From contig QPMI01000027.1 in assembly GCA_004431415.1 (NCBI GenBank), forward strand, positions 1 through 64,000: a DNA stretch of 64,000 nucleotides, in the 5' to 3' direction. The stretch is from Cyanophora paradoxa CCMP329 (Eukaryota > Plantae > Glaucophyta). The translations under genes were made by a program, and so were the position numbers. Under the pieces are notes generated by a model. The model searched no databases and was not told the DNA's origin. It worked only from the letters and a program-made list of their open reading frames with translations. How positions within the stretch are numbered: position 1 is the stretch's first letter; every line of letters begins with the position of its first letter. Below are positions 11,301 to 59,738 of the stretch, one piece after another.

Positions 11301-11879
11301 TTTCCATCTCCGCGTAACGCAGCCAGACGGTCGAGTTGCGGTAGTCAACGTCGATGGCGCGCTCGAAGACCGAGCGTGCGCTGCGGCGGCGGTCAGTGCG
11401 GGCCCCCGCAGGCGCAGCGCGAGCCGCTCACCGGGCGAAGTCCTTCTGGCTTTCCTCCCACGCTGCATACTTCACCCAGTTGGCCATCAGCGTCCTGTTC
11501 TTCCGAATGTTGTCCTCGAAGGTCTTCCGCTTGTTGAGGCTGCAAGGCAGGGCGTGAGCGAGCTTCGCATCATCGATGACGGCGTTCGAACATCCCCGTA
11601 CCGATAGTCGGCCAGCTCCTCCTCATCTGTGATCTTCTGGCGAGGCGGCTTGAAGTCGGGGTCCTGCCTGTCCTTCGCTTCACGCAGAATCTGCTCCGCT
11701 GTGATCTGGACGGGCGCGGGCGTCTTGTTCTTGACCTGCGGCGCGATGGGGTGCTTGTGTGAGCAGTGCAATGGGGGAGCCGACCAGATGGGCGGCACCC
11801 GCGTCGTCTTCGGAAGCTTCTGGGCGAGAACGCCCGTAAGCTGCGATTTCGGCATCCCGACCGGCTGCGACTGCGACAT
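8375..11879 (-). CDS. CRNKL1: Crooked neck / Syf3 / Clf1 HAT-repeat splicing factor (about 23 introns)
   Basis: Spliced N-terminus TTR|[48 protein letters not shown]|[32 protein letters not shown] and C-terminal [15 protein letters not shown], all diagnostic of Crn. TAG at 8375-8377. Confidence 0.95.
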
Positions 11880-12523
11880 TGCTGGGCCGGAGTAGGGACT
11901 CGACCGCAATCGATCTACACCAGTCGCGCTGCGCTGTGTGGTCGCACAATCGACTTTGCTCGTGCGTGCGATGCTAGGCTAGCTGCTGGAGTAGAGAAGG
12001 CGCCTGTACCCTGAGGGTCTGGGGGCGGGACGAAAGCCGTCCGGGTACACCTCTAATGGACGCGCTGTCCGGGGCGCCGCGAAGAGCTCCCGCCGGGGGC
12101 CTCAGAGTAGCAAAAGAGCTACGCAGCACGAATTTAGCACGTTTGAGCTCGCCATACCGCGACGGCGGTTCCGCGCCCGTTACGCATCGCTTCGTCTTCT
12201 TGTGGCCCGCATGGTCCGGTGAACGCGTAAAAGTGTTCGGAAGCAATGGGAGCACTAGCTAGCTCTCGCTCACCGTCGCCGGCCGCACGTGCATCCGACG
12301 TCATTGCAGACCGGGACGTCACCGCTTGAACGGCGTCGGCCGCGTACGCGTACGCGTCACTGCGATTCGCGATTCGCGAATCGACACGACCGTCAACCGG
12401 CCCCGCGCAACATCAGAAACACCGCATTCGCATCTTACGCGCTCGTCTCTTCTCCGGTTCGAGGCTCCATCAGCTAGCGCTCCCCGCTCCGGCCCAGCCG
12501 CAAAGAAGCTTCGGTTCGTCGCC

Positions 12524-20278: not shown

Positions 20279-21315
20279 ACCGCACCACGCCAGGCGAGCC
20301 CCACGTAGCCTTAGCGCAGCGCAGAGGGGGCCCGAGAGGCCCCACCGCCCCCGCGACTTCCCCGCGCGGCGCCCCCGCAACCCCTGTAGCTAGCCTGAGG
20401 CCGCCCGCCGGCTTGCTCCAGCCTCCACCGCGCTTCTGCCCGTTTCAGAGGGCGAGCGCCCTGTAGTCTCCTTGCCAGTGCCGGTACCCGGTGTATGAAT
20501 ATTGCTATCTGACGTTATCTGACGTTGGTATTTGAGTTCGAATCCGCCCAACCGGCATCATGCCATGACGGCATCTCGAGAGAGAGCCGCTGACTCGAGT
20601 GAGCTTCCTGGACATCTGATCATGAGTCTCAAGAATACAGATCGATGCGGAGCGCGTTCGGGATGTGCAAGGGCGGGACGCAATGGAAACTCGCGATTCT
20701 CCGGTTCTCGGGAAAACACTACGTCGGACAAAGCTATCCTAGCTACGCATAAAACCTATATCGATATCAACATTATGGCTAGCGTTACGCAGTAGACGAC
20801 TCCGCGACTCAGCGGGCAATTGCCGGTACCGGATACGGAGTCCGGACCAGAAAATATTCAAGATTAAAGACGCCCTGAAGGCGCCTAATGCAAGCACGAA
20901 CAAACTGGAGACTAAATGTTGCAATCTTCTCGGTAAAGGCACACGAATGACTGAATACCTTGAAACTAATCGGAAGTCTACGCTGAAAAAAGTAAGGCAA
21001 AGCATTAGACACTCGGAGTCTCGAATCTGCACGTCGCGAAACGTGAGCGTGCCAGACACAAAACCACTGACTGAACAGGAGTCTGAACTGAACTGTGAAC
21101 GGCAGAGACAAAAATGTGGCGGCCTTCACGGTGCAGCCGTTCGGGGCGGGAGTGCTCGATCTCGCTCCGCCGGCTGGGCCGCGGAGGCCTGGATCTGATC
21201 TACGGCGCACGCGGCGCGCGCAAGGAGAATGTACACCTGAAAAAACGGGTCGATGACGAATCGAACATGCACGCTGGAGGCTTCGATTGAGGGGGCCTCG
21301 GAGCGGGTGGAGGGC

Positions 21316-22753
21316 TCAGAGGGACAGGAGGAGGGCGGCGGCTGCGACGGCGCCGTCGTCGCGGGCGGCGGCGGCGGCGCAGGAGTCGGGGGATCCCGCG
21401 GATGCGGAGGAGGAGGCGGGGGAGTCGGGCGAGCTCCCCTCCGCCGGCTCCGCCCCCGAGTCCTCCTCCGAGAGCCCCGCCCCCGCCTGCCGGTGCGGCC
21501 GCCGCGCCGCCGGCGGCGAGAGCGCCGTCCGCCGCTTCCCGCGCGTGGAGAGGGGCAGGACGGGCGAGGAGGGCGGCGCGGAGGCGTGCGGGCGGGCGCC
21601 GAGGCTGAGCTGCGAGGCGGCGCGGGCGAGCCCGTGGTCGTCCCGCGAGGAGGGGACCTCGGCGCCCGCGCGGCGCGGGCCCCGGTGCAGCTGCCGCCGG
21701 CCCCGCGCCGCCCCCGCCGCTGCTGCCCCCGGCTCCGACGCCGCGCGCGAGAGGAGGGGCGGGAGCGGCGACATCGGCGGGCCGCTCAGGCCCGACAGGA
21801 GCGGCGAGGACTGCGGGCGGCGATCGGCCGACGGACGGGTGCACGCGACGAGGGGAGCGGGGGGTTGGCGGACCTCGGGCGTGCGCTGGATGGGCGTACC
21901 GCGTCCCGAGAGCGGCGTGCCGGCGCCGGACGAGGCGGGGGTACAGCAGCCGGAGGGCATCCCGCAGTGAGAGGGGGTGGAGGCGGCGCGGGAGAGGGCG
22001 GTGCGGGGGAAGGGCGCGAGGTGGAGCATGGAGAGGCGCTCGAGGGTCGCCTGCTCCAGCGGCATCCGCTGGCGGGAGAAAAGGAGGCCGACCGCGATCA
22101 CGTGCGCCGACTCGAAGGCCTCCCCGGCGCGGACGCCGCGCACCGAGACGGGGAACGCCAGCGCTGCCATCGAATTCGAATTTTTAGATTCGAAATCGCA
22201 TTCGGCGGCGGGCTGGCTCGAGGGCACCCGTCATGAAGCCGGCGTCGGTCGCGGCGGCGCTGCGGAGGAGCGCGTCGGGCGGCGAGCGGCCGATGTCCTG
22301 CGTCCACCGCACGCGCCTGCGAGTTGGGCTGCCTCAGGCGCGACGCGGAAATGAGGCGGCGGGGCGCGCTGACCGGGTCGAGAAGGCGCCGCCGACGAGG
22401 CTCTGGCCGGCGGCGATCTTGATGCCGTCGGCGGCGGCCGCCATGGCCTCGATCACGGCGACCGAGGCGTCGTCGTGCGCGATCCCCCGCTGGAAGAGGA
22501 GCCCGTCCCCGGACTCCGAGCACGGCATCCAAATCTCACCTGGGGTCAGCGAGCCGCCTGGGGTCAGCGAGGCTAGCGCGCAGGCGCTGGCGCCAGCGAA
22601 TTGAAGGCGGAGCGAACCGTAGCTCCACCCTGGCACCGACCCCAGGATCCCATCGAGCAGGGACGTGACGCGATCATGCACGAAGTCGGCCGGGAGTGCG
22701 ATGAAAATAGGCGAGCTGGGCAGCACGAGCTGCGGCGATGAGAGGGGCGCCAT
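21316..22753 (-). CDS. GAF-domain protein with low-complexity S/P-rich C-terminus
   Basis: Two-intron model reads EIWMP...GQSLVGGAFSTR|RVRWTQDI...LLRSAAATDAGFMT|ALAFPV...VIAVGLLFS, the pattern of GAF domains (cyanobacterial GAF_2 / NLP-type). Recognised by motif only. Confidence 0.6.
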
Positions 22754-23895: not shown

Positions 23896-26800
23896 ATGGG
23901 CTGCAGCTGCAGTCGCGGGGCCGTTGCGCCGTATCCAGGCAAGGCAACTGGTCCCGCGACCGCGCGGACGGCGCGTAGCCGGAAGGGGTCGGCTCAAGGA
24001 GATCTTGCGGAGCTGGAGACGCACAGGCAGGAGGTCGAGCTCAAAGTCTCGAAGACGCGAGGCGCGGCCGGCGCCCACCTCCCCGCCCCGCACCGACGCG
24101 CGCGATCCTCTCTCCCATGCCGACCGCGCCTCGCAGTTGTCCGCGTCTTTGTCTCCAGCACCTTCCGGTTCGCCGCCCCCGCCCCGGCCTCCCGGCCACG
24201 GGCCGCCGGCCTGACCTCGCGAGGCGCAGGGACATGGTGCGCGGGGCGGGGGCGGGGGGGGCGGGGCGAGGTGCGCTGAGCGGGGCGCAGAAGGAGGACC
24301 GGGACGCGCTGAACGCGAAGTGCTTCCCGGCGATGCGGGCGCTGTGCGCCCAGCGCGGCCTGCTCTTCGTCTCCATCGACCTCCGCTGGGGCGTCACCGC
24401 CGCCGTGCCCGCCCCCCGCCCCGCCCCGCCCGCCAGCGCCGCGCGACCCCCGCCGGCCCTCACGCCTCCTCTGCGGGCAGGACACGGAGAACAACCTGAC
24501 CATCCAGATCTGCCTCGACGAGGCGCCCGCCCGCCCCGCCCCGCGCCCGCGCCCCTGAGGGGTGGGGGCGGCCCCGCTCACTGGCGCCCCCACCGCCCCT
24601 CCAGATCGACAAGTGCCGGCCGTACTTCGTCGGGATCCTGGGTGCGCGCGCGCGCCGACGAGCGCCCCCCGCCCGCCTCCCCGAGGCCCGCCCCGCCAGG
24701 CATGCGCTACGGCTGGGCCCAGCAGACCGACGGGTGCGCCGCGTGCCCCCTCGTCCCCCGCCTTCGCTCCCGCCTCCCTCCGCCCCTCGGCGTGCGAGCT
24801 GGGGCGCGGGGGCGCGGGGGCAGGTCGGACGCGCTGCTGGCGGCGACGTTCAAGCACGCGGAGAAGAAGAGCAAGTACAAGTGGCTCAAGAAGTACCGCG
24901 ACCGCTCCGTCACCGAGGTGCCGCCTGCGCGGGCCGGCGCCGCGCCTCGCGGGGGGCCTGAGGGCGGGCGGGGGTACAGCTCGAGATCATCTACGCGGCG
25001 CTGGACCAGCCGAAGAAGGACACGTACGGCACCTTCTTCTACTTCCGCGCCCCCGACTACCGTCCGCCCCGCCTCCTCCCCGCCCTGCGTCCTCCCCCCG
25101 ACCCTCCGCAGGGCCCCCCGGGGCCGAAGGCATGAGCGCGGACGAGCTGGCGGGGTACCGGGACACGGACGCGTGGCGGCTGGAGCGGCTCGCCGCCCTC
25201 AAGCAGCGCATCCGTGACTCCGACTTCCCCGTGCGCGGGCGCGGGCGCGCTCCGGGGCCGGCTGCAGGCGTGCCGAAGAGGCGCTCCGGGGCCAGGTGTA
25301 CGAGCCGTACGGGAGCGTGGGGGAGCTCGCCGAGCGCCTCCGCTCCGACCTCGAGGCGGTGCGGCGCCCCGCCCCCGCCCCAGCCTCGGCCGCCGCCCCC
25401 CCGGCCTCCTGAGAGCACGCGGCGACGCCGGGGACTCCGGGGGCGGGGGGGCAGGTGATCGTGCGGGACTTCCCGGAGGCGACGCAGCCGACGCCCCTCG
25501 AGCGCGAGCGCCAGGCCCACGAGGCAGCCCCCGGCCCCGCCCCGCCCCGCCCCGGCTCCCCTCTGAGAGGCGCCGCAGGCCTTCGCGGAGATGCGGCGGC
25601 GGGTGTACGTCGGGCGCTCCGCCCTCATGGCCCAGCTCGACCGCCTCGTCGAGGGTGCCCCCCCGGCCCCGCCCCTCCCTGCCCCCCGCTCCTCCTCCCG
25701 CCGAGGCGCCGCGCCGCGCCCCGCGCCGCGCAGAGGAGGGCCCGCCGGTGTGCGTGCTGGGCGAGGCCGGCGCCGGCAAGAGCGCCTTCATCGCCAACTG
25801 GGTCCACCGGCGCGCCCGCCCCGGCCCCCTCCCGCCCCGGGGGGCGGGCGAGCGAGCGAGGGTGGCGGGGCGCAGGTACCGCTCGCGGCGCCCGAAGGAC
25901 TTCATCTTCATCCACTTCATCGGTGCGGCCCCGGGCGGGGGCGGGCGGCGGGGGCGGGGCGGGGGCGGCGGAGCGAGGCGGGTGCGGGGCGGGGCGCAGG
26001 CGGCTCGAACGAGAGCGCGTCGCACGTGAAGCTGGCGCGCCGCCTGCTGGCCTCCCTCGAGGACGCCTTCCCCGGCAAGCTCGAGGCGGAGGCCCCCAAG
26101 GACGCCGACGAGGCCGTGCGCGCCCTCCCCGACCTCCTCATCCAGGCCGCCGCCGCCCTGCCCCGCCCCGCACGCATCTGCCTCGTCCTTGGTGCCCCCC
26201 GCCCCCGCCCCGCCGGCGCGGGCGGGGGTGATGCCGGGGCGGGCGGGGGCAGACGCGCTGGACCAGCTGGAGGAGGCGCCGGGGGCCTCGAGCCTCGCCT
26301 GGCTCCCCAAGTCCTTCCCCCGCAACGCCCGCCTCGTCGTCTCGACGCTCCCGGGGCGCGCCCTCGAGGCCACGCGCGAGCGCGGCTTCCGCGAGCTCCG
26401 CGTCGAGCCCCTCGCCGAGCCCGTGCGCCCCGGCCACGCTGCTCCCGCGCTGCTCCCGCCCCGCCCCGAGCCGCGCGGGCCCGCCCTGCTCTGGCGCGCA
26501 GGAGCAGCGGGAGATGATCCGGGAGTACCTCGGCCAGTACGGCAAGGCGCGCCGGCGGCGGCCGCTCGGCCCCGCGCGGCGGCGGCTGAGGCGGGGGGGG
26601 GGCGCAGCGGCTGGAGGAGGGGACGGTGGAGCGGATCGTGGGGGCCCCGCAGGCGCGCAACGCCCTCTACCTCCGCACCCTCCTCGAGGAGATGCGCATC
26701 TTCGGCGACTTCGAGAAGGCCCGCCCCGCCCCGCCCCCCGCCCCGCCGCGGCCCCGCGCCTGTGTGCGCTGACGGGCTCGCGGCAGGTGGCGGAGAAGCT

Positions 26801-29800
26801 GGAGAGCTACCTGGCGGCGGCGACCGTCACCGCCCTCTACGACGCCATCCTCCACCGGTCCGCCCCCGCCGCCCCCGCCCCCCGCCCCCGGCGCGACGCC
26901 CGCCCCGCGGTGGCCGGGGCTGAGGGGCGGGCGGGGCGGGGGCAGCTGGGAGGGCGACTTCAAGGAGCTCCCCGACGTGCGCGCCCCCGCCGGCGCTGCC
27001 CGGCCGCCTGCAGCTGCCCGCAGCGGGGGGCGCTGAGGGGGCGCCGGCGGCAGGTGATGCGCCTCGTCGCCGTCTCCCGCTACGGCCTCACCGAGGAGGA
27101 GCTGATGAGCCTCCTCGCCCTCCCCGCCGCCCGCTGGTGCGCTGGCCGCCCCGAGGGGAGCCGGGCGAGCCGCGGCGGCTGACGGCGGCGCGGGGGCAGG
27201 TCGCCGCTGCACTCGTCGATCGCCGACTCGATGGTCGTCCGCTCCGGCTGCCTCAACTTCTTCCACAAGGCCCCCGCGCCCCGCCCCCGCCCCGCTCGGC
27301 CCCTCTGAGCGCCAGCGCGCAGTTCATCGCGGAGGCGGTGGCGCAGCGCTACCTGCGGGGCGGGCAGCCGGAGCGCCTCCGCGTCCACCGCGTCCGCCCC
27401 CGCCGCCCCGGCCCCCGCACCCCGCCCCCGCCCCCGAGCCCGCCCCGCCCCGCCCCGCAGCTCCTCGCCGACTTCTTCCAGCGCCAGCCGATGAGTGCGC
27501 GCGGCGCCGGCCCGCCGCGGGGCGGCGGGGCGCCGACTGCGGGGCGCGCGGCGCGCAGGCGAGCGGCGGGTGCAGGAGCTGCCGTACCACCTCGCGAGCA
27601 TCCGGGACATGCCGCGCCTGGCCGACTGCCTCTCGTGCGCGGCGGCCTGAGCGAGGAGGAGGGCGGGGGGCGTGCGCCGGGGGCTGAGGGGGCGGGCAGG
27701 GACCTGGAGGTCTTCTCGGCGCTCTACAAGGAGAGCACGGTGTTCGAGCTGTGGGACTACTGGCGCAGGGTCGGCGAGGCGGCGAGCCTGGTCGAGTGCT
27801 ACCGCAGGCGCCTCGACGAGTTCGAGAGGAGGAACGCGGGGGAGCCGCTGGCGCGCCCCCCTCCCTCCTCCCGCCTGCGGGGCGCCTGACGCGGGGGCGG
27901 CGCAGCGGCTGGCGAACCTGCTGGTGAAGGTGGGGCAGTTCATCGACGAGACGGGCAAGTACGACCAGGTCATGGTCCGCCCCGGGGCGGCACCTGCGGC
28001 CCCCGAGCGCCGGCTCACGGGGCGGGGCCCGCAGCCCTTCTACGAGCGCTCCCTCGGCATCCTCCGGAGCGCCCCCGGCGGGGAGGTCGACCGCCAGGCC
28101 CGCCCCGCCCCGCCCCGCTCCCCGCCTTGGCGCTCACCTCTGCGCAGGCGGTGGCGGCGGTGATGTCGGAGATGGCGAAGCTGCAGTGCCGCCTGGGCCG
28201 CACCGCCGACGCCGTGCGCCGCGGCCCGGAAGGCGACCTTGCGCGGGGGGGCGGGGCCCTGAGGTGGCGGGGGCGGGCGGGGGCAGGTGCCGCTCTTCGA
28301 GCAGTCGCTGGCGATGGCGGAGGAGACTTTCGGGGGCGACCACGAGGAGGCGCCCCCGCCGCCCCCGCCCCCCCTCTAGCACGCCCAGCCCGCTCCACAG
28401 AGGCTCCTCACAGGACTTTCTCGCGCTGCCTCGCTCGCGGCCTGAGGCGGGGCGGCCGCGCGCGGCCTCGCAGGTGGCGTTCGTGCTCAACAACCTCGGG
28501 ACGGCGTACCAGGAGCTCCGCGACTACGACCGCGCCATCCCCTTGTCCGCCCCCCGGGTGAGCCGCGGCGGCGGGGCGGGGGCCGAGGGGCGGGCGGGGC
28601 AGGTTCCAGCGGGCGCTGGCGATCTACGAGGGGCGGCGGGGGGCGGAAGACCCGTCGGTGGCCCGCGCCGTGGCCAACCTCGCCCTCGTCTACTCCGACC
28701 AGGCGCCCCCGGCCCCGGCCCCGCCCCGCCGGCGGAGCTGCCCGCACGCGAGCCCCGCTGACGCGCCCCCGCCGCAGTCGCGCTACGAGGAGGCCCTCGC
28801 GAGCTACTCGGTGCGGGCTGGGCCCGAAGGCCCCGCGCCGCAGGGGGCGCCGGGGCGGGGCTGAGGGGGCGGGCGGGGGCAGCGGGCGCTGCGGATCTGG
28901 GAGGAGGCGCTCGGCAAGGAGCACCCTGAGGTCGCCAGGTCCGCCCCGCCCACCGCCCTGCCCTCCCGCGCCCAGGCCCACGCGCCGGCAGCGTGCTGAA
29001 CAACATGGCCCTCATGTACCACTCCGAGAAGAAGTGCGGGAGTGTTCTCCGCTGGGCGGCCGCCGTGCGCGCCGGAGGGCCTGATGCGGGGGCGGGGCGG
29101 CAGGTACGGGGAGGCGGTGCCGCTGTACCTGCGCTCGCTGAGGATCAAGGAGGCGTACCTGGGGCGGGAGCACCCCTCCGTCGGCACCGCCTACAACAAC
29201 CTCGGCCTCGTCTACAAGCCCGCCCCCGGCCCCGCCCCGGCCCCGCCCCTGCCCCCGCCGCTGACGGGGCGGGGCGGGGCGGGCAGGGACCAGGAGCGGT
29301 ACGAGGAGGCGCTGGGGGCGATGCGGCGCGCCCTCGACATCTGGCGCGCCTCCTTCGGCGACGGTCCGCCCGCCCACAGCCGCCCTGCCCGCGCCGCCCC
29401 GCTGAGGGGCCGGGGGCGGGGGCAGAGCACCCCGACGTGGCGCTTGCGTACAAGAACATTGGCAACCTGCACAAGAAGCAGCAGCAGGCCGGCCCCGGCC
29501 CCGGCCCCGCCGCCGCCGCCGCCTCGGGCCTGACGGGGGGCCGGCGCTGGGGCGCGCAGATTGGGGAGGCGCTGGAGGCTTACAAGGCGTCGCTGCGCAT
29601 CCTCCAGAAGCTGCACGGGCCCGAGCACCCTAACGTGCGCCGGCCCCGCCCCGCCCTCGCCGGCCGGCTGGAGCGGGGCGGGGCGGGCAGGTGCGGAAGC
29701 TGGGGGCGACGGTGGCGCTGCTCGTCGGCCTCGTCGACCGCGCGCGCTCCGGCTCCACCCTCTCCTCCTCCGGTGCCCCGCCCCGCCCCCGCCCCCGCCC

Positions 29801-31109
29801 CTCCAGCGCGCCGCCGCCGCGGGGCGGGGCGGGGCTGACGCGTGGCGGCGGGGGCGCAGCGGCCGGCCTCACGCTGAACGCCTCGTCGGCCTCCATCGAC
29901 CCGGGCTCCCCGGGGCCCCTCTCCGCCTCCAGTGCCCCCGCCCCCGCACGCGCCGCCTCCCGCCGCCGGCGGCTGCTCTGACCGGCGCGGCGGGGGCGGC
30001 GGGGGCAGGCAACACGCTCAACACGAGCGTCGCGTCGGACGAGACGGCCCCCAGGAAGCCGCCCGGCGCCTTCAGCGGCCTCCTCGCCACCGCCACCAGC
30101 GGCCCCACCCCCAGGTGCCCGCGCTTGGATGGCGGGGAGGGAGGGGTAGGTGGCCCCCGGGGGCCCGCGATCTGACGCTGTGGGCCGCCCCGCAGCCCCG
30201 CATCGCCGGGGGCCGGGGAGCACGCTGGCGGCCCCCGCGGCGGGCGGCGTGCCGGCCTCGGCGCTCCTCAACAAGCGGGCGTCGGGCACGAGCCTCGCGC
30301 CGCTCTCCGTCTCGGAGCCCTCGCCCCGCGCCGCCCCGGCCCCTCGCCGGCGCAGCAGGCGAGCGGGGCGGCGGGGCGGTGGGGGCCGTGCCCTCCCCGG
30401 GGCCGGCCTCGCGGACGCCCACGTCGCCCGCCTCGGAGAACGTCTTCTTCACCTTCAACAGCGTCCCACCCCCGCCGCCCCGGCGCGCCCCGTCCAGGCC
30501 CGCACCGGCTCCTCCGCCCAGCTGCCGCCCCGGCAGCTGACGCCGGAGCGGGAGCGCGGGGGAGCAGCGAGGCGCCGCGCACGCCGACGAGCGCGCGGCG
30601 GCCGTCGCTCGAGGTCGACGTCGCGGGGGGCCGGCCCTCCGCGGAGCTCCCCCGCCGCTCCTCCCTCGGGGCCACCTCCCCGTCGCCCGCCGGCCCTCCC
30701 TCGGCGGGGGCGGGGCGGGGCCAGGCGGCTGCCGACGCCCACGGGGGCGCCCCGGGGCCATCCAGCCGGCGGGGTCAGCCCCCGCGCGGACCTCGCCCGT
30801 CGCCTCGGCCTCCAAGTCGCTCTCGCCGCCCCGGGCCGCGCCTCGAGCACGCCCGGCAGCGCGCGCCCCTCGAGCAGCGGCGGCGCGGAGAGGGGCGCCC
30901 CGGCGCCGGCGCTGGCGGCCGTGCCGCGCCTCGGGAGCTCGGGGGCGATGACGCCGGGCTCGGAGCGGGCCGCCTCGGAGCGGGGGCCGCCGGGGCGCAG
31001 CAGCAAGCTCAAGGCCGACGCGGTGCGCGCCGGGGGGCCCAAGGCGAGCCCCTTCGCCCCGCGCCGCGGCAGCCTCGTGCCCCTCCCCGCCAAGGGCGCC
31101 AAGCGGTAG
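23896..31109 (+). CDS. DUF4062 + STAND/NACHT-like NTPase + TPR protein (NPHP3/TEP1-like), about 43 introns
   Basis: Spliced VRVFVSSTFR|DM|KEDRD...FVSIDLRWGVT...CLDE|IDKCRPYFVGILG|MRYGW (DUF4062). Walker A LGEAGAGKSAFIA, Walker B LVL|DALDQL, and kinesin-light-chain-type TPRs (EHPSVGTAYNNLGLVY). N-terminus MGCSCS. Confidence 0.88.
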
Positions 31110-32094
31110 CCCCCGCCCCCGGCCGCCAGTCTCTAGCACCTGCCAGCTCGAGGTCTCAACTTTGCGTTCCGCGCCGCGGCGCGGCGTCTGCCCACAGCGA
31201 GTCGTGAGGGGTGCGATGGAATTCGCCGGGGGCGGGGGTACCTCAGTGATCCAGTGACTCTAGGACCCGGGAGGCTCGGGGGAAGCAGCAGCTCTCCCCG
31301 GCGTGCAGCTCCGAATTCTAGATCTCGAAGTTTGCTGGTGCCTCCCAGAGCCTCGGAGTTCGCAGCCTCCTCGGATTGCATGTGCATGCCGCCGCATCGC
31401 GCACGTATACGTAGCTGGCAGGCTGCCAGGCTGTTCGAGTCCTCGTAGGAGAAGTCTCGGGTCAGCTCTCAGAGTCTAGTTCTAAATCTCTCAGACTAAA
31501 TGGGGAGGTGCAGGGGGGCTTGCCCCCCTGTTTGTCATGCCCATGAGAAACTCGAGAGCTCACTGAGTTCGAGTCAGCTGGCAGGGCAGCTCTCGAGCTC
31601 ATGATCAGGGTTTCGAGGTCTCCAGACTTACGTCGACGTCGAATCGAAATTCCCGGAGTCCGATCGCGAGTCCTCGAACTCAACCTTTGTCGGTGCCGCA
31701 GCACCAAGGTGCGCATGCCACGGTCCTCGAATCATGAGGGGGCCCTGAGCGGGAGGCAGGAGTCTGCGCATCACGACACACCTAGTCCTCGGCGGCGCGG
31801 CGAGGCTCGGCGCTCGTAGCTCGGCGGCCCCCGGTTCTATCGCCCTCCCGAGCTCGAGAAGCCGACGCCCCCAGAGTCCCAGGCCCGCTACGCGCTCGAA
31901 TCGAACGAAACTGCCGGTTTGCAAGCGCAACAGTCGAGTACGCGAGCGCTCTCCGCTGCATCGAAGTTTCGAGTGCGCGCGAGCGGGCCAGCATGATCGA
32001 TCGCATCGCAAGGGCGATTCTTGTCCGTGATGATTCTTTGTTGGATTCAACTGCACAAACGGAGGGGATAGATTGCGTCCCCGGCGGCGCCGGC

Positions 32095-35000
32095 TCACTT
32101 TTTGGCGCGCTTCTGCTCGGGGCGGTCAGCTCGGGGGGGGGGCAGAGAGGGGAAAGAAGGGCGACGCACCCCGCCGGCCCCCGCGGCGGCGGCGCCGTCG
32201 GACTCTTTCCGCTTGGCGCCGGTGGCCGAGCCGCCGGACTTGCGGGCGTCGGCGGAGGAGTCGCGGGCGCTGGCGCGCTTGCCCTTGCCCTCCTCCTCGT
32301 CGTCCTCTGCCTCCTTCTCGATCAGCTTCACCAGCTGCTCGAACCGCCGGCTGCGCGCGGGGCGCGGTCCCGCCCACGTCGGGGGGCGCTGGGGCGCTGC
32401 GCTGCGGGCGGGGCGGGGCGGGCGGCACCAGAGCTCGAGGGGCGTGCGGCTCTTCATGTAGTAGTCGAAGCGGAACTGGGGCGCCTTGCGGACCTGCGGG
32501 GCGGGGCGGGGCGGGGCGGGGTGAGAGGGGGCGGGGCGGGGGGCGGGGCCGGGGGCGGGGCGGGGCCCGGGCCTCGTTCTTGATGAGCTCCCACTCGCCG
32601 AAGCCGTGCTGGGCAACCGCCGTGAGGAGGAAGCGGTCCTCGTCCTGCCCCCCACGTCAGCCGCCCGGCCCGGCGCGGGGCGGGGCGGGGCGGGGCGGGG
32701 GCGCCTCGGTGAAGGTCTTGCCGCGGCTGCTCCCGTACGCGATCTTGAGCTCCTGCGAGGGCCCCCCCGCCGGGCTCGGCGCGGGGCGCGGGCAACGGCG
32801 CGGGGCGAAGCAGGCAGGCGGACGTGGAGGGGGTTGCGGTAGCGGGCGACCTTGGCCCGCACGATCTCCATCATCTCGTCCCGCCGCCGCAGCTTCTGCT
32901 CCCCTGCGCCCCCCCGCCCGTGAGACGGGGCGGAGCGAGGCAGGCGGCCTGCGGGCCGACGCGCCCTTCTCGATCTGCTTGATGATCTTCTCGTAGTCGG
33001 CGATCTCCTGGTAGCGCTTCCAGAAGACCTTGTGGTACTCGCGGACCTGCGGGGCGCTCGGGCGGGGCGGGCGGGGGCGGCTGGGGCGGGGCGGGCGGGC
33101 CTCCTCGGGGGTCTTCCCCTCGACCTCCTTGGAGACGTCCTCGATGTCCTTGCGCCCGTACTTCTCGCACGCCCGGATGTACGCTGCGGGGAGCAGCCTC
33201 TTTGAGCGCCCCGCGGGGCGGGGACGGGGGAGGCTAGGGGCCCCGCGCACCCTGGAAGTCGCGCTTCGACCAGTCGCGGAAGCCGTCCTGCATCAGCGCC
33301 TCCCGCTCCGCCCGGTCCTCCTCCGTGAAGGGCGGCGGGGGCGCCCGCTCCGCCCCCTCCGACGGCGTCGGGCTCGCCCGCGCCGCCCCCGCCCCCTTCT
33401 CCTCCTCCTTCGACGCCCGCCCGCCCTTGCGGCCCCCGGCGGCCCCCTTCTTTCCCCCCGCCGGCGCCGCCGAGCTGCGCGCCGCGTCGGCCCCCGCTCG
33501 GCGTGCCCCCCTGCGGCAGGCAGGGGAGGGGGCACCTGGTGCTCGGGGTGGGCGAGGGGGAGGGGCGCGGGCCGTCCGCCGCCTCCTCCGCCTCCTTCTT
33601 CACCTCGGGGGCGCCCTCCTCCTGCGCCCGCCGGGCCCGTTAAAAGGGGCGCCCCGCTGGCCCACGGGGGAGGCGCCCACCCGCTTCACGTCGGGCCCGT
33701 CCTCCTTCTTGGGGGCCCCCTCACCCTCGGGCGCCGGCGTCGAGTTGGAGGCGCGGCCGTCGGCCCCCTCGCCATCCCCCGCCGGCGTGCTCTGCGCCAG
33801 CCGCTTGTTCCACTGCTCCAGCTCGTACTGGTACACCGCCAGCTCCTTCCGGTACAGCTCGTCCAGCCGCTGCCCGCCCCCCGCCGCGTCGGCGGGCGAG
33901 CGGGCGGGCCGGCGGGGCCGGCGGGCGCTGGGGCGCACGGCCTTGTTGAAGAACTGGAAGTCGTAGACGGGCGGCTCGCGCGGCTGCTTGGGCCCCCCCT
34001 TGGGCTTCGACGGGCCCTCCGCTGACCGCTGCCGGTTCTCGGAGTAGGTCCCCACCTTGCGCTCCCGCTTCGGCGGCTCGATCCACAGGTTGCCGCTGCC
34101 CCAGCGGCCCCGCTGCGACCGCCTCGGCCCCCGCATGCGCGGGAGGGACGGGAGGGGCGGCGGGGCCGGCCGGCGCACCCCCGGGCGCGTGTAGTCAACG
34201 CCCTCGAAGGTCTGGAAGCCGGTGCCGCCGTCGGTGGAGAAGGTGAGGAGGCTGTGGGGCGGGAGGAGACTCGGCGGGCGCGGGGCGGGCGGGGAAGCGG
34301 GATGGGAGGGCGGGCACCTGGACTCGCCCATGTTGGCGAACTTGGACTCGAGCTCCGCCGACTTGGTCGTCCCCTTGTTCAGGATCTCGTCGATCCCCTC
34401 CTCTGCCGCCCCGCCCCGCTCAGGCCGGGGGGCGGGGGGAGGGAGGCGGGAGTACCGGAGATGGAGGCGTCGCCGGCGCGGAAGATGGCCTCGGCGCCGT
34501 GGCGCACCATGTCGAGGAGGGCCCCCTTGGTGAGCGCTGCGGGGGCGAGCGTCACGCGGCGCGCCGGCGGGCGCGCAGGCCGGGGGCGCACTCTTCGCCT
34601 GGTCGGGGAGGCGCCCCTGCTGGATGACCACCTGGTCGAGCCGCAGCTGCGCGCGAGGCCCGCCTCGTTCCCTCGCCCCGGGCGCCCCCGAGGCGCCCGC
34701 CCCGCACCTTCATCTCGGCGCGCTCGATGATCTTCTCCTCGATCGTCCCCTCCGTCACCAGCCGGTACACCGTCACCGGCTTCGTCTGCCGGGGGGGGTA
34801 AGGCGCCGGGGGGGGGGCGGGCGGGGCGGAGTCGCGGGGTGCGCGCCTGGCCGATGCGGTGGGCGCGGTCCTGTGCCTGGAGGTCGACCTGGGGGTTCCT
34901 GCGGGGCGGTCGGCCCCCGCCGGCGCCGGCGAGGAGGGGGCGGGAAGAGAGGGCCGGGGGCACCAGTCGGAGTCGTAGAGGACGACGATGTTGGCGGTGG

Positions 35001-37857
35001 CGAGGTTGATGCCGAGGCCGCCGGCGCGCGTCGAGAGCAGGAACAGGAACTTGCTCGAGCTGCCCCGCCCCCGCTCGGCGCCGCTCGACCCGCCGGGGCG
35101 GGGCGGGGCGGGGCGCGGACTCGGGGGCGTTGAACTCGGCCACGGAGCGCTCGCGCACGTCGCCGTCCGTGTCTCCGTCGATGCGGCAGTACTGCCCCCC
35201 GGCGCCGCCCGTCAGAGAGAGCGGCGCGGGGGGCGGTGCGGCGCGGGGGCGGGGACCTCGTAGCCGCGGAACTCGCAGTAGTCCTGCAGGATGTCGAGCT
35301 GGCGGGCGGGCGGGCGGCGTCAGGCGGCGCGCCGGGCGGGCTGGGGAGGGGTGTGCGGGCGGCGCACCATGCGGGTCATCTGGGAGAAGATGAGGACGCG
35401 GTCGCCGGTCTCCCTCAGGCGCTTCAGCAGCTTGTCCAGCAGCACCATCTTGCCTGAGGCAGCCGCCGCCCCCGCCGCGCGTCGGCGGGGGGCGAGGGGG
35501 GCGCGAGGAGGGAGGGGCGGGGCGGGGCACCGCAGTTCTCCACGATGTGCTCGGCGGTGACATAGACGCCGTTGAACTTGGGCTCCACCCCGTCGAAGAG
35601 GTACGGGTGGTTGCAGACCTGCGCGGGCGCTCGAGGGGGCGGGGCGGGGGGCGGGGCAAAAAAGGGCGGGGGGCGGGCCTTGCGGAGCTGCATGAGGATG
35701 TTGAGGAGGCGGACGCGGTCGCTGCCGACGCCGTTGACGGCCTCGAGGTCGCGCTGCAGGATCTTCATGTAGAGGTCCCCTGCCCCCCGCCCCGCCCCCG
35801 TCAGCCCCACACGCCCCGCCCCGCCCCGCCCCGCCCCGCCTGCCCGCGCACGCTGGGCGGCTGTGTAGCCGACGTAGAGCTGCATCACCTTCTTGGGCGG
35901 CAGGCTCTTCTCCACCTCCACCTGCGCCCCGGCGCGTCGCCCGGCAGGCGGGGGGCGGAGGGCGTGCGGGGGGGCGGGCCTTGAGGCGGCGGAGGAGGAA
36001 GGGGCGGAGGACCTTGTGCAGCTGCGCCACGGCCTCCGTCTCGAAGCCCGTGCCGATGTTGAACCTGCGCGGGGGCTCGGACGGTGGCGGGGCGGGGGGG
36101 GGGGGGCGCCCCGGCGGCGAAGAGAGCGGACCACTCGTCGAAGTCCTCTGCGGAGCCGAAGATCTCGGGGAGAAGGAAGTTGAGGAGGGCCCAGAGCTCG
36201 CGCAGGTTGTTTTGCAGCGGCGTCCCCGTCAGCAGCAGCCGGCACTGCGTGTTGAACGTCCGCACGACCCGCGAGAGCACGCTCTTCTCGTTCTTGATCC
36301 GGTGCGCCTCGTCGATGATGATGTACCGCCACGTCCACTGCGCCCCGCCGGCTCAGAGGAGACGAGGGGGCGGGGCGGGGGTACGGGGGCGGCGCGCCCG
36401 CTTGAGGGCGCCCTTCTCCTTGATGGCGACTTCGTAGGTGGTGCAGACGACATCGAACTTGCCGGCGTTGATCTCCTCCCGGATCCCCTCCTGCCCGCCC
36501 CCGCTCGGCCCGGCGGGGCGGGGCGGGGCGGGGCGGGGCGGGGCGGGGCGCACGCGCTCCTCCTGCGTGCCGTGGAACTTGATGACGTTCAGGGACGGGC
36601 ACCAGCGCTTCAGCTCGTTGCACCAGTTGAACAGCGTCGACTTGGGCGTGATCACCTGCGCGCCAGCGAGTCAGCGAGTCCGACCATGCCGCTCGCTGCG
36701 AGCACGGCCGGCGCACGAGATGCGGCCCGCGAACGTTCTTGTAATCCTTGAGGAAAGCCAAGAGCGAGATCGTCTGCAGCGTCTTGCCCAGACCCTGCGA
36801 GGAACGCGGCGGCACGTCGGCGGCGCGAACGAGGAGGGGAAGCCCGGTGAAGGGCGAACCATCTCATCAGCCAGGATCCCGTTGATGCCGTTCTCGTAGA
36901 GGCGAATGAGCCAGTTGAGGCCCTCGAGCTGGTACGCGCGCATCTGACCGGTGATGCCTGCGCCGGCGCCGGCGTCGCGACGGGCGGTCCAGAAGGCGGG
37001 CGGGCGGTCACAGGAGCAGAGCCGCGCACTGGGCGGCTGGGCGGTCAGGCGGGTGTGGTGCTGCGTCGCCGGCTCCTCCTCCTCGAGCACTTCCTTCACA
37101 AGCTCCTCATCCTCCTCCTCTTCCGCGATGCGCCCGCGCTTCCGCTTCTCACCCCTGCATCAAAGAACGCGCGCGCGACGTCAACAGAACCGCGGGGCGG
37201 CGCAGCGGCGCGGGGCGGCCGCGGCGCGGGGGCGTACTTTGCCGGCTGCTCGTTGTGCTTCTTCTTCATGAAGTGCCCGTAGAGCTCTGTCTGGTCCAGC
37301 AAGTACTTGAGACGATTCCGCGCCGTGGAAGCCTGCATTTTGTTTGTGGCGGGTGGGGTGGACATCGGTTTGCGGCGGTATACGCGACGGCGGGGACGAT
37401 CCGACAGCTGAGCGAACCTTATCGGCGTCGACTTCCTTTGCAACCGCTGCCTGTTGCGCGTCCTCCTCCGCCTTCTTAGCTTCTTTCTTCTTCTTCGCCT
37501 CCAGGCGCTTCCGCGCCGCGGCAGACATCTGCGGGGCATCGGTTGCCGGGGTCTGCTTGCCCTGCACGGAAGGAAGCGCTTCAGGGAAGCGGCAGCGAGA
37601 GCGCGCGCCACACTCGAGAACCCACGCGCCTCGCTAGCGCCGTCCTCCCCGCCATCATCGAGCTCCTCGAGCGCCCGCAGCTCCTCCTCGTCCTCGAGCT
37701 CCTCATGCTTTGGCGCGTCGGGCATCTCCGCGTCGCTCGCCTGGTTCGCGGGAAAGCGGTGGTTTGAATGAGGGAGGAAGGGCGGCGTGGGTGAACGCAA
37801 TTCGGGCACGCTCTGCGACATAATGGAGCTCACCGAAGCGGCCGCCGCGTCCGCCAT
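32095..37857 (-). CDS. ISWI: ISWI/SNF2H chromatin-remodelling ATPase (SMARCA5/CHR11-like)
   Basis: [20 protein letters not shown]|[59 protein letters not shown], and HAND-SANT-SLIDE peptides ([18 protein letters not shown]). Confidence 0.96.
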
Positions 37858-38337: not shown

Positions 38338-41300
38338 ATGGGCCGGCATCATGACCTTGACGCTGAGCTGACAGCGATCGGCCCCGAGCCGAAGCATCTG
38401 CCGGGGGCGGTGCCAGATGAGTCGGACGACTCTTCGTCGCGGCCGCTGCACCCCGGAGCGCACGTCGTCGATGTCGGGGTCGCGCTGCCGCCGCCGCACG
38501 CCGATGCGCACCAGGTCGAGCACGAGATCGCCCAGCACCACGACCACCTCAGCATGGTGCGCGCTCCGCCCCGCCCCCACGCGCGGCTGTTCAACTGCTG
38601 GCGCCGGCTGCCGGGGAGAGCGCACGTGCACGTTGCTCCGGATGCTCACGCCCCGCATATCCACGGGGCAGTGTCCTCGGCTCATGTTTAACATCTAAAC
38701 GCGAGCTGCGATCAGATCAAAATTCTCCCCGAATTTGATCCCGCTCGCCCCAGGTCCCTGTGTTCCAGGAGGGGAAAGTCACCGTCGGCGAGGCGCGCGA
38801 GCAGCGGCGGATGTCCTTTGGTGCGTGCACGTGCACCCCCGCAGCACCCCCCGCCTGCAACTGTGACTGATCCCGTATGCATCTTGCCCGCCGGCACAGA
38901 TCAGCCGAAGAAGATCGAGATTGCCGAGAAGAAAGTGCCGACGCAGTTCAAGCACGAGGTGCACCGGCCCTGTTCTCGAGCGCTGCAGCTTTAGGTCTCG
39001 CTCACATGCAAGCCGATCGCGATCGCGACCGGGATCGCAGGTCGACATGGTCCGTAACTTTTTACCCCTTTGCAATTGCCCGCCCGCCAGCTCCGCTTGG
39101 CCTGATGGGGATATGGATGGGGCGGGCAGGACGAGCACCAGGTGGCGGTGGACGAGCTGGCGGCGCGCCTCAAGTCCTCCGTCGCCGCCGGCCTCACCTC
39201 CGCGGTGCACGGCCCTCGCCCCTCCCGCGCGCCCCCCGCCGCTGAGCCGCTGCCGGCGTGCCGGTCGCCAGGCCGCGCAGCAGAAGCTGGCGGAGGTCGG
39301 CCCCAACTCCCTCACGCCCCCGAAGACCACCCCCGAGTGGGTCAAAATCATGAAAGCCTACTTCGAGGGCTTCTTCATCATGCTGTGAGCCGCCGCCCGC
39401 TTTAATTTGATTCTGTTGTTCGAGATCACGTGTTCTCATCTGCATGAATAATATTAATGTTTTCTTGCAGTTGGATCGCCGTCGTCCTGTGTTTCCTTGC
39501 ATACGGCCTCGACCGCCGCGACAACGGCGACGCGGTGAGCTCGAGCCGGCTTGGCTTTTATCATGCTTAATCGTACTCGATTCCGTGCACTGCGCCTCAT
39601 GTTGACGCTGCTCGCTCCCAGGCGGATCTGAGCAATCTCTACCTGGCGGGCGCGCTTCTCATCACCATCATTTCGACGGGCACCTACGGCTACCTCCAGG
39701 TGCGCGATCCACCGGCACAGCCTGGCAGCTAGAGGCAGCTAGAGCTTGAATTCATTCAATTATAATAATTTTGTCTCTTCTGTCGGCTCTGAGTATATTT
39801 TGAACAGGACCGGAGCTCCAACAAGCTTATGGAGGGCTTCCAAAATGTGTTCGAATTCGCTTTTTCAAGTGAACCGGTACCAGTCGATTTCCATGACTGA
39901 CCGCCGGGGTGCCGCGGGGGCCAGCTGCTGCCCTCGCTGGCGACGGTGACCCGCGACGGGAAGAAGTGCGAGATCAACGCCCGCGACCTCGTGCCCGGCG
40001 ACATCGTCCACGTGGTCCGCTGCCCCAAATCAAGGCTCCGTCTGTGTCCTGCAGGCGTGGCTGATCGTGATTGCGGCACGCGTCGTGCTTGCCTTAGGTC
40101 GGCGGAAACAAGATCCCGGCCGACATTCGGGTCGTCGAGTGCAGCCATTTCAAGGCGAGCTGGACACTTCTTGGATTGAACTCTGCCACAATCTCGATCT
40201 TGATTCACTTGACTTCTGCCGTTCAGGTCGACAACAGCAGCCTGACCGGAGAAGCGGAGCCTCAGTCGCGTTCTCCAGAGTGCAGTGCGCCCTGCTCTTG
40301 CAAGGATTTCGATATCGACATAGATTGATCCGACGTCACCCGTGCAGCGGACAACAATCCCTTCGAGACCAAGAATCTCGCTGTGCGCTTGGATCCTCGT
40401 CTAGATCCACTGACCGCCTTGAATTCGTCTCCGGTCCGCCCCGCATCCGACGCTCGCGATCGGCGCAGTTCTTCGGGACGCTCGCCGTCGAGGGGTCGGC
40501 CACCGGCATCGTGGTCCGCCCTAGGCCTCGTCTTCGAGTCGCGGGATTCTGTCCCCTCGATCCTCGTCTGAGCCGTCGCGTCTCCGCGTCAGATTATGAC
40601 TGGAGACAGCTCCATGATCGGGCGCATCGCGTCTCTCGCCTCTAGTGCGGCTAGCGACGCAGCGTCAGTCATTTGTATGTCTTTTCTGACAGCGGTCCAG
40701 ATGTGGGGGACCAGCCGTCGACGCTGGACAAGGAAGTCCACCACTTCATTCGGATCATCATGATCTGCGCCGTGATCGTCGGTGCGGCGCGGCACGGCAC
40801 CCTGAGCACTGCCCTTTCCGGGATCAGCCATTTCTTACAGCGTCCACCGCAGGCGCTGTCTTTTGCGGTATCGGATTCACGGTCTGGAACCCCATCTACA
40901 CGCTGGTCTTCGGGATCGGAATTGGTGCGCTCGCGCTCGTTTTTCGCGTCGGCGAGCACTTCTGCAAGAGCTCTAACTTGGATGGCATCGATTCTAGTCG
41001 TCGCCATGGTCCCTGAGGTGCGCTCTGGTCCTGGCTTCCCTCGGCGGGCATCCTTTTGCGAGTTCTTTGTTGGATATTGATGTTGCGCGTTTTAGGGGAT
41101 GGTCGCGACGGTGCTTGTCTCCCTCTCCGTGGCGGCGAAGCGAATGGCGCAGAAGAACGTCCTCATCAAGAAGCTCCAGTTCGTTGAGTGCGCTAACTTG
41201 TGATTTCGGGAACATAGAAGCGATAGCTAGACCTGATCATGAATATTAGATTGTGTGTTAATGAGCGATGGGCGCACGACGCTCGGGAGCTGCAACGTCA

Positions 41301-51529: not shown

Positions 51530-59738
<8,209 letters not shown>

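Follow-up and report, generated by a model that had tools for sequence, protein, structure and literature searches.

Exon-locked G-to-C polarity of synonymous codons in intron-dense genes of Cyanophora paradoxa

Genes and features of the window

The window analysed here is a stretch of 64,000 nucleotides from Cyanophora paradoxa CCMP329 (GenBank assembly GCA_004431415.1, contig QPMI01000027.1, positions 1 to 64,000). It contains intron-rich genes on both strands, which are listed below together with the features referred to in the text.

255-7000, minus strand: nucleotide cyclase / P-loop STAND-like gene, about 45 predicted exons
7834-11881, minus strand: Crooked-neck-like (HAT repeat) gene, about 25 predicted exons
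21316-22227, no strand assigned: long open stretch, putative 'GAF exon', with third-position G/C blocks alternating at roughly 110-165 nt
23896-30114, plus strand: resolved part of a P-loop/TPR gene, 43 exons and 42 introns with a G/C wave
24168-24229 / 24230-24236 / 24237-24290, plus strand: moderately C-rich intron, 7-nt micro-exon and G-rich intron, with one C-to-G cycle over the two introns
24291-24404, plus strand: showcase exon, transcript-confirmed, four-fold sites 9/9 G and then 13/14 C
26608-26718, plus strand: showcase exon, transcript-confirmed, four-fold sites 10/11 G and then 10/10 C
29104-29217, plus strand: showcase exon (TPR, with TPR_12 match), transcript-confirmed, four-fold sites 12/13 G and then 10/10 C
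30115-31109, plus strand: C-terminal tail of the P-loop/TPR gene, low-complexity, with one or a few introns and a TAG stop at 31107-31109 (from frames and stops)
31869-37492, minus strand: ISWI-type SNF2 ATPase gene, about 34 predicted exons
41567-44204, plus strand: P-type ATPase, copy 1
55362-57711, plus strand: P-type ATPase, copy 2, 94% identical to copy 1

Eight anchor exons of the P-loop/TPR gene, and the numbers of exonic bases between these anchors, were obtained from spliced transcript contigs. The exon model of 23896-30114 was built on them with a length-constrained dynamic programme that made no use of skew, and all exon and intron counts for this gene refer to that interval, the tail at 30115-31109 lying outside the model. 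Exons of the minus-strand and ATPase genes were predicted with a codon/splice-site model that had been trained on gene 23896-30114, and some of their micro-exons are dubious. The P-loop/TPR gene appears to have a DUF4062-NACHT-TPR architecture: P-loop and DUF4062-like motifs are visible on direct reading of its translation, and TPR_12 was matched in exon 29105-29215 in a single-exon Pfam search. This was the only match among the exons searched singly, the NACHT and SNF2 exons (too short) giving none, and the stretch 21316-22227 likewise had no Pfam match that would bear out its putative GAF identity. An Rfam search of the whole window returned no match.

Exons and introns of the pre-mRNA share a GC content of about 80-88%, and the intron density is extreme: an intron interrupts the coding sequence about every 76-90 nt. 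The donors have a degenerate consensus (GYSCGC), 14 of the 42 in the transcript-constrained gene being GC donors. The polypyrimidine tract is missing from most introns, with a G-rich tract usually in its place.

Polarity of exons and introns

The exon-locked G-to-C polarity is real and very strong. Over 605 four-fold G/C sites in gene 23896-30114 the G fraction falls through the exon quintiles from 0.77 to 0.65, 0.51, 0.20 and 0.11 (Fisher odds ratio 8.05, p = 1.1e-32), with 31 of 36 exons following the G-then-C direction. The first-pass annotation had drawn attention to the effect in three exons picked by eye. Its counts for them are reproduced exactly, and the effect stands in the unbiased count over the 605 sites (p of 1e-32), as it does when the three showcase exons are omitted (p = 1.3e-24). 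The further statement that the wave dictates synonymous codons was also sound, since third-position skew moves from +0.20 to -0.32 (p = 2e-51) and positions 1 and 2 barely shift. No published description of an exon-locked G-to-C wave was found in the literature.

The polarity is the same on both strands, three minus-strand genes showing G-then-C in their own sense, as had been surmised from a single ISWI exon (34964-35059; 5/6 G, then 14/14 C). The third-position G fraction drops from 0.65 to 0.30 across quintiles in the ISWI-type gene (odds ratio 3.5, p = 1e-12) and from 0.74 to 0.18 in the nucleotide cyclase / STAND-like gene (odds ratio 6.05, p = 8e-28), and the odds ratio for the Crooked-neck-like gene is 4.2 (p = 1.4e-9). 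P-type ATPase copy 1 gives quintiles of 0.68, 0.64, 0.28, 0.17 and 0.33 (odds ratio 4.1, p = 2.6e-6); copy 2 has the same polarity and, being 94% identical, provides no independent test. Copy 1 is of lower GC, and its introns (69% GC) have a weak gradient, from -0.25 to +0.01. As the ATPase exons are polar although their introns lack G/C arms, exons carry the polarity by themselves. Alternating blocks, also described at first pass, are indeed present at third positions of the putative GAF exon. In the tail of the P-loop/TPR gene local G/C segregation is weaker (variance ratio 1.4), and the frame ending at the TAG has third-position blocks of roughly 100-200 nt.

The change of composition within exons is sharp. 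A single G-to-C step per exon fits 85% of four-fold sites, compared with 71% when labels are permuted, and 484 G/C alternations are observed along these sites where 699 ± 23 would be expected if the sites were independent. The flip moves further in as the exon lengthens (slope 0.56, r = 0.70), lying about 35 nt into exons of 60-90 nt, 55 nt into those of 90-130 nt and about 90 nt into longer ones, which on average is slightly before the exon middle (mean s/L 0.44, sd 0.22). Even exons of up to 230 nt have a single flip, and runs in long exons reach 100-126 nt.

Introns run in the opposite direction on average, with G/C skew by quintile of -0.33, -0.32, -0.06, +0.14 and +0.28 (42 introns, Wilcoxon p = 7e-7). 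The earlier description of introns as C-rich and then G-rich thus stands for the mean gradient, but only 11 of the 42 are individually clear cases, seven being C-rich and five G-rich throughout. The swing at intron sites (-0.33 to +0.28) is exceeded by that at four-fold sites (0.77 to 0.11). The proposed phase-lock to splice sites is upheld by the location of the flips: 74 of 103 G-to-C flips are exonic and 77 of 103 C-to-G flips are intronic, the latter mostly in the middle or 3' part of the intron. Composition is continuous across the splice sites: exon starts tend to be G-rich where intron 3' ends are (rho = 0.37), and exon ends C-rich where intron starts are (rho = 0.33). Within an intron, the skew of the 5' half correlates positively with that of the 3' half (rho = 0.39). 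The minority bases are enriched for T in C blocks and, in relative terms, for A in G blocks (odds ratio 1.64, p = 1e-5); the CpG observed/expected ratio stays near 1.2 throughout. Introns of genes in both orientations have a net excess of C and T on the sense strand, which marks a transcript-oriented asymmetry.

Short exons are skipped by the wave. For the micro-exon at 24230-24236 the transcripts demand 38 exonic bases between anchors, and the model restores the conserved ...FRDMKEDRDAL motif. Of its two flanking introns, which the first-pass annotation had called C-rich and wholly G-rich, the downstream one is G-rich as described (G 37, C 11) and the upstream one only moderately C-rich (C 32, G 21). 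The suggestion that two introns here share one wave extends to exons of 45 nt or less in the transcript-constrained gene, which have a C-rich intron upstream and a G-richer one downstream (n = 11, p = 0.005).

Unit length, RNA folding and the origin of the blocks

The wave had been interpreted as a nucleosome-phased code with a period near 165 bp. The exon-plus-intron unit of gene 23896-30114 has a mean of 146 nt (median 138.5, sd 41, range 61-253), and mean units of 146-165 nt (sd about 40) are seen across genes. A positioning or mutational code in phase with nucleosomes, with one nucleosome-scale unit per exon-intron pair and a dyad-symmetric asymmetry at free sites, would account for the unimodal spacing of intron centres near core size (pooled median 145.5 nt, with 40 of 139 units at 140-160 nt), for power in the 100-260 nt band that in four genes is 3-5.5 times the shuffled level, for a pattern that is reverse-complement symmetric and unbroken across splice sites, and for a minimum block length with short exons being skipped. 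A nucleosome-length period is, however, not borne out by the measurements. The flip stretches with the exon (one flip in up to 230 nt, blocks to about 126 nt), about half of the units fall below 147 bp, and in four genes the skew spectrum has its peak at 138, 176, 161 and 169 nt, respectively, so that no fixed repeat length common to genes was found. Neighbouring units do not compensate one another: for four of five genes, sums over 2-4 units have a variance that does not fall below the permutation null, and for the fifth it does not do so significantly. The variance amounts to about 1.0-1.7 × k × the unit variance for k units, unit lengths resembling independent draws. There is no trade-off between exon and intron lengths, the ATPase genes are polar in their exons without overall skew periodicity and the intronic pyrimidine excess on the sense strand violates dyad symmetry. 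We therefore regard such a code as improbable. It is just as doubtful that the G/C runs constitute a self-organising second information layer of the DNA or chromatin, in which domains no smaller than about 40-50 nt and a favoured full cycle of about 145-150 nt, e.g. one histone-bound unit per cycle, would limit intron sites and unit length. If this were true, chromosome mechanics, and not splicing or translation, would set codon choice.

The first-pass alternative was that pre-mRNA hairpins bring splice sites together. In such hairpins C-rich 5' parts would pair with G-rich 3' parts within introns or into exon halves, much as in the AC/GT-repeat introns of fish. Any C block and any G block can pair at about -50 kcal/mol, the length of a C block correlates with that of the next G block (rho = 0.27, p = 0.006; the reverse order is uncorrelated), a G-rich tract occupies the usual place of the pyrimidine tract in most introns and the donor-acceptor structural distance is slightly below that of controls (25.4 versus 27.8 steps, p = 0.08). 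The folding calculations nevertheless speak against hairpins of this kind. Minimum free energies of whole exons and whole introns are no better than those of shuffles (z of about 0 to +0.2, with shuffling of the entire sequence or inside each half), 160-nt units are as stable as their exon-synonymous/intron shuffles with unaltered predicted splice-site accessibility, and duplexes of cognate donor and acceptor blocks (-48.9) have no advantage over non-cognate ones (-50.5). Moreover, the halves of an intron are positively and not negatively correlated in skew, 12 of the 42 introns have one skew sign throughout and the ATPase exons are polar without intron arms. Bridging hairpins are accordingly a rather remote prospect. 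What does change is local structure. At donors, 44-nt folds reach only -12.8 kcal/mol, compared with -15.2 kcal/mol in synonymous/intron-shuffled controls (p = 3e-10); acceptors are likewise less structured than their controls (p = 0.002), but exon centres, the location of the flips, show no such weakening.

Alternatively, the blocks might be self-reinforcing skew domains of mutational origin at the DNA level, in which a local strand asymmetry, arising for instance from R-loop- or G-quadruplex-prone G-rich non-template DNA or from another transcription- or repair-linked bias, would feed back to perpetuate both G runs and C runs; splice-site needs would only pin the domain walls, and a function would be unnecessary. 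Such domains would explain why blocks are sharp and persist over exon-intron borders, why intron halves correlate positively, why short exons are skipped, why blocks occur in long stretches without recognized introns and why strong segregation of skew over all sites is confined to the most GC-rich genes. Four-fold sites of the ATPase duplicate also evolve no slower than its introns: divergence is 4.6% compared with 3.0%, based on only ten four-fold differences, a tiny sample with no trace of strong purifying selection. The model does not say, however, why G-to-C walls should be exonic and C-to-G walls intronic, four-fold exon sites swing beyond the presumably freer intron sites, and the ATPase exons keep a polarity that their introns hardly have. 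The purine- and pyrimidine-like minority bases are unlike the products of cytosine deamination, and the deamination model was rejected on the wrong sign of this A/T partition and the lack of CpG depletion. On balance, a purely mutational origin seems unlikely.

The introns themselves could descend from a transposon-like 'introner' family with C-rich/G-rich terminal inverted repeats, inserted preferentially at pre-existing coding C-to-G nodes. The extreme intron density, recurrent 5' ends (GYCCGCCCC-type strings) and the many 3' ends composed of a CTGAG/CTGAC branch motif, a G tract and CAG are suggestive of a family, and the two intron ends are roughly mutual reverse complements; intron-end strings are also highly repeated in DNA contigs, but they are of low complexity. 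Target-site duplications are absent, however, the common suffix/prefix of cognate ends being no longer than that of non-cognate ends, and no cognate inverted repeat is present (10.8 versus 11.0 of 22 positions). None of the papers searched links introners to Cyanophora, and the polarity of exons in genes without intron arms would be left unexplained, making an introner origin very improbable.

A possible splicing adaptation and comparison with known systems

The pattern fits a description as strand-composition domains that are pinned in the transcript. Free sites, i.e. four-fold positions and intron interiors, form sharp homogeneous runs, either G-rich and purine-leaning or C-rich and pyrimidine-leaning and mostly of at least 40 nt. 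Acceptors tend to sit in G runs and donors in C runs, which places a G-to-C flip in the exon and a C-to-G flip in the intron whatever their lengths, and exons too short for a flip are skipped. As to the cause, we lean tentatively, and with rather less than even confidence, towards an RNA-level adaptation to the splicing of very short introns in pre-mRNA of about 80-88% GC, maintained by selection on splicing and presumably involving factors that read the pattern. Segregation of G and C may remove local G:C self-complementarity near splice sites, and G/purine-rich exon starts, with exon ends being C-rich, may offer an enhancer-like context to acceptors that lack a tract.

An adaptation to splicing agrees with a polarity that is anchored on splice sites, scales with exon length and is fitted by one step per exon, with its persistence in ATPase exons without intron arms and with the larger swing at four-fold than at intron sites. 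It is also consistent with the weaker local folding at donors and acceptors, the weak donors and the transcript-oriented C/T excess of introns, and the correlation between G-rich intron 3' ends and G-rich exon starts fits enhancer-like compensation for tract-less acceptors. Other observations weigh against it. Skew tells true sites from decoys only to a modest degree, with an AUC of 0.70 at donors and 0.57 at acceptors, and was discarded as a stand-alone splice-site classifier. The acceptors of short exons lie in a C-rich context, so that a G context is not obligatory, and local structure is lower at intron centres too, so that the reduction extends beyond splice sites. Folds of whole exons, whole introns and 160-nt units are as stable as shuffles, with splice sites no more accessible, the ATPase divergences given above do not point to constraint within their tiny sample and alternating blocks also occur in long, apparently intron-free stretches. 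We know of no trans-acting reader of such a G/C pattern.

If the pattern is genome-wide, synonymous sites in this organism are far from free, with about 85% of four-fold sites predictable by a splice-tied step function, and evolutionary rates based on dS would be biased. Gene finders would be misled, yet could also be improved by using the pattern; the published Cyanophora annotation has been described as problematic for HMM-based predictors, and many stop-free antisense reading frames have been reported for the genome (PMC6704402), which codon polarity may partly explain. Cyanophora would also offer a tractable system for splice-site recognition at equally extreme GC in exons and introns, with one third GC donors and no polypyrimidine tract. 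The size of the effect is unusual under any cause, whether it lies in a splicing code, in economical RNA folding, in mutational feedback or in chromatin.

Patterns of sequence and methylation on the nucleosome scale have a fixed repeat length and are phase-coherent over several nucleosomes. Huff and Zilberman in 2014 and Huff and coworkers in 2016 reportedly described nucleosome-scale methylation of linker DNA in small algae and transposon-derived introns that insert between nucleosomes. For 6mA, an occurrence in linker DNA has been documented across eukaryotes, including a Cyanophora nanopore data set for 6mA and 5mC (PMC12695648). The unit of about 150 nt and the tie between gene structure and a repeating DNA pattern are shared with these algal systems, but the Cyanophora period tracks the local exon-plus-intron length, has no phase compensation and comprises units of which half are below core size.

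A second parallel is found in introns bridged by structure. Zebrafish introns with (AC)m-(GT)n repeats are spliced without U2AF2, and human structured introns have G triplets in their first 40 nt and C triplets in their last 40 nt (Lin et al. 2016, PMC4691745). A weak or missing polypyrimidine tract is common to these introns and those of Cyanophora. Complementary simple-sequence arms at opposite intron ends have a counterpart in the mean C-to-G gradient of the Cyanophora introns, of which 11 of 42 are clear individual cases. The orientation in Cyanophora is inverted relative to the human case (5' C-rich, 3' G-rich), there is neither an excess of stability over shuffles nor cognate pairing, the skews of intron halves are positively correlated and the core of the pattern is exonic and persists without intron arms.

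Exonic splicing enhancers cause a synonymous codon bias near exon ends in mammals and other eukaryotes, with shifts of a few per cent within tens of nucleotides. General context on splicing-coupled selection is provided by PMC1713244 and PMC3245539. In Cyanophora, as in enhancer bias, codon choice varies with distance from the splice site and leaves the protein untouched. Here, however, the flip shifts with exon length and does not keep to a fixed short distance from exon ends, and the switch is almost digital, with 85% of four-fold sites fitted by one step per exon. In further contrast to enhancer bias, the effect covers the whole exon, stretching to about 100 nt or more from the splice site, is of opposite sign at the start and the end of the exon, runs on into the introns and skips short exons.

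Transcript support and structure of the P-loop/TPR gene

The GC content of the window is patchy, ranging from 53% to 82%, and the stretch of the P-loop/TPR gene that carries the wave of G-rich and C-rich blocks lies at ∼79%. Comparison of the contigs of four public runs with positions 23896–29890 (5,995 letters) gave spliced, RNA-like contigs of 3.1–4.7 kb in three of the four runs. Eight exons are confirmed by the listed contig pieces, and the exonic length separating them follows from the contig coordinates. The remaining exons were placed by a dynamic programme that was constrained to these transcript-derived lengths and scored on codon usage, open frames and GT/GC...AG borders only. The resulting model spans 23896–30114 with 43 exons and 42 introns, and all counts exclude the tail of the gene (30115–31109). 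Among its exons is a very short one:

24230–24236, plus strand: micro-exon of 7 nt, placed where 38 exonic bases are needed between anchors and restoring a conserved motif of the FRDM-KEDRDAL type.

Read from the translation, the protein has an MGCSCS motif at the N-terminus, a P-loop and many TPRs; Pfam confirms TPR_12 alone, on one exon. The first coding exon (23896–24061), in which MGCSCS forms a myristoylation/palmitoylation-type start, is rich in codons ending in T or A and is without the G-to-C polarity of the internal exons. The gene (plus strand) converges with an ISWI gene (minus strand), with the coding ends <0.8 kb apart (31109–31869). A transcript contig continues ∼1.6 kb past 29213 in spliced (contig) coordinates, the genomic end depending on the tail introns, and the 3′ UTRs of the two genes could overlap.

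Polarity of exons and introns

The first-pass annotation described exons that begin with G-ending synonymous codons and switch to C-ending ones, using three examples picked by eye (24291–24404, 26608–26718 and 29104–29217). Their four-fold G/C counts were exact on recount, and an unbiased count over the 605 four-fold G/C sites of the gene found the polarity to be equally strong. The G fraction falls through successive exon quintiles (0.77, 0.65, 0.51, 0.20, 0.11), giving an odds ratio of 8.05 between the first and second exon halves (p = 1e-32, or 1e-24 without the three examples), and 31 of 36 exons run from G to C. A single G-to-C step per exon fits 85% of four-fold sites; the opposite step fits 67%, and permuting the labels gives 71%. 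G/C alternations number 484 against 699 ± 23 for independent sites. With four genes pooled, third-position skew swings from +0.20 to −0.32 along exons (p = 2e-51), whereas codon positions 1 and 2 and amino-acid classes hardly shift; the wave is thus confined to synonymous sites, as originally supposed.

Gene prediction elsewhere in the window, by a splice-aware chain finder with the P-loop/TPR gene as its training set, yielded three predicted genes on the minus strand: an ISWI-type ATPase, a crooked-neck-like gene and a cyclase/STAND-like gene. Each displays the same polarity in its own sense (odds ratios of 3.5–6, p from 1e-9 to 8e-28), bearing out the proposed strand symmetry. The intron density of these three genes (255–12064 and 31869–37492, minus strand) is extreme, at ∼1 per 70–90 nt of coding sequence, and far exceeds the published average of 9.2 introns per gene for the genome.

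The introns of the P-loop/TPR gene were said to run in the opposite direction to the exons. This holds on average, the skew of the 42 introns climbing from −0.33 to +0.28 from 5′ to 3′, but individual introns are heterogeneous: 11 are C-then-G, seven are C-rich throughout and five are G-rich throughout. A net excess of C and T on the intron sense strand, found in genes of both orientations, is a transcript-oriented component. The donor consensus, GYSCGC, is weak, 14 of the 42 donors in the transcript-constrained gene (24062–29905) are GC, and the tract ahead of most acceptors is rich in G instead of pyrimidines. In most introns of this gene a G-rich tract comes after a branch-like CTGAC/CTGAG motif.

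Exon polarity is also present (odds ratio of 4) in two P-type ATPase copies that are 94% identical and lie in a part of the window with 60–65% GC. In these copies the introns, at 69% GC, barely rise from C to G, and no significant periodicity is seen in skew over all sites. Polar exons combined with near-flat introns indicate that the polarity of exons is the central feature, to which G/C arms in introns may or may not be added. Segregation of G and C over all sites is strong only at 1–6, 24–30 and 32–36 kb, the regions of highest GC content (72–82%). The ATPase duplicates (41105–45686 and 54872–59744), ∼14 kb apart and 88–94% identical including introns, look like a recent segmental duplication. 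Four-fold divergence between the copies, based on 10 changes only, is not below intron divergence.

At 21287–22227, overlapping plus- and minus-strand ORFs, neither with a Pfam hit, use the same third codon positions (GC3 of 0.95). Many long stop-free antisense frames have been reported for the Cyanophora genome (PMC6704402), and this pair illustrates how the genome yields them.

Spacing of the flips

Of the flips called by two-state segmentation, 103 in each direction, 74 of those from G to C lie in exons and 77 of those from C to G in introns, in keeping with the claim that the wave is phase-locked to splice sites. The claimed period of ∼165 bp fared less well: units of one exon and one intron in the P-loop/TPR gene have a mean length of 146 nt (median 138.5, s.d. 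41, range 61–253 nt), and intron centres in the four pooled genes are spaced at a median of 145.5 nt (s.d. 43). Power in the 100–260 nt band is 3–5.5 times that of shuffles, with peaks that differ among the four genes (138, 176, 161 and 169 nt). The flip scales with exon length (slope 0.56, r = 0.70), falling at ∼35 nt in exons of 60–90 nt, at 55 nt in those of 90–130 nt and at ∼90 nt in longer ones; exons of up to 230 nt hold one flip only, and runs reach ∼126 nt. Successive units show no compensation in length, exon and intron lengths show no trade-off, and roughly one unit in two falls short of a nucleosome core in length. The scaling of the flip, the uncompensated units and their shortness all speak against a fixed lattice. 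The spacing between flips peaks at 125–175 nt, with a second hump at 225–300 nt, which is expected from skipping one exon–intron unit and needs no lattice. Taken with the gene-specific peaks, these sequence data do not support a nucleosome-phased code with a nucleosome-length period.

Skew state carries across splice sites (rho of 0.33 at donors and 0.37 at acceptors). Exons of ≤45 nt host no flip; in the transcript-constrained gene the intron upstream of them is C-rich overall (−0.30) and the downstream one neutral to G-rich (+0.06; n = 11, p = 0.005), and the 3′ half of the upstream intron differs from that at longer exons (p = 0.001). The remark that two introns share one wave around the micro-exon therefore generalizes to a rule for such exons. 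The pattern is one of stretchable domains no shorter than ∼40–50 nt, with walls pinned inside exons (G to C) and inside introns (C to G).

Candidate causes and precedents

Pre-mRNA hairpins that bring splice sites together had been offered as an alternative to the chromatin explanation, with folding against shuffled controls as a check. Neither the 143 introns nor the 120 exons that were folded are more stable than their shuffles, whether whole sequences or halves were shuffled (z of ∼0 to +0.2). For units of ∼160 nt, minimum free energy and predicted splice-site accessibility equal those of controls with synonymous shuffling of exons, shuffling of introns or both; donor–acceptor structural distance is marginally shorter (25.4 versus 27.8, p = 0.08). 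Pairing of a donor block with the acceptor block of the same intron is no stronger than with acceptor blocks from elsewhere in the intron set, and the skews of the two intron halves are positively correlated (rho = 0.39), where paired arms would predict the opposite. The sole point in favour of hairpins is a weak correlation (rho = 0.27) between the lengths of a C block and the next G block. On these predicted folds the hairpin explanation is not supported, although any C block may pair generically with any G block at a modelled ∼−50 kcal/mol.

The minority bases are purine/pyrimidine-like, with T-rich C blocks and relatively A-rich G blocks (odds ratio 1.64, p = 1e-5), and CpG is not depleted; both argue against a deamination-driven skew, which was rejected. 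A search of introns for the marks of a transposon-derived (introner) family gave neither target-site duplications nor inverted repeats specific to each copy.

Segregation of G and C weakens predicted local 44-nt folding by 2.4 kcal/mol at donors (p = 3e-10) and also weakens it at acceptors (p = 0.002) and intron centres, not at exon centres. The explanation that we favour, held tentatively and at somewhat less than even probability, is that the polarity is an RNA-level adaptation to the splicing of short introns in pre-mRNA of ∼85% GC. Segregated G and C would keep splice-site neighbourhoods clear of local G:C pairing, and the polarity would supply G-rich exon starts and C-rich exon ends. Its main rival, self-reinforcing mutational domains pinned by splice signals, seems to us unlikely.

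The original observation of exon polarity is confirmed and extended. No description of this G-to-C pattern was found in the literature searched; what comes nearest to it in print is splice-proximal codon bias, together with the structure-bridged introns of Lin et al. (2016).
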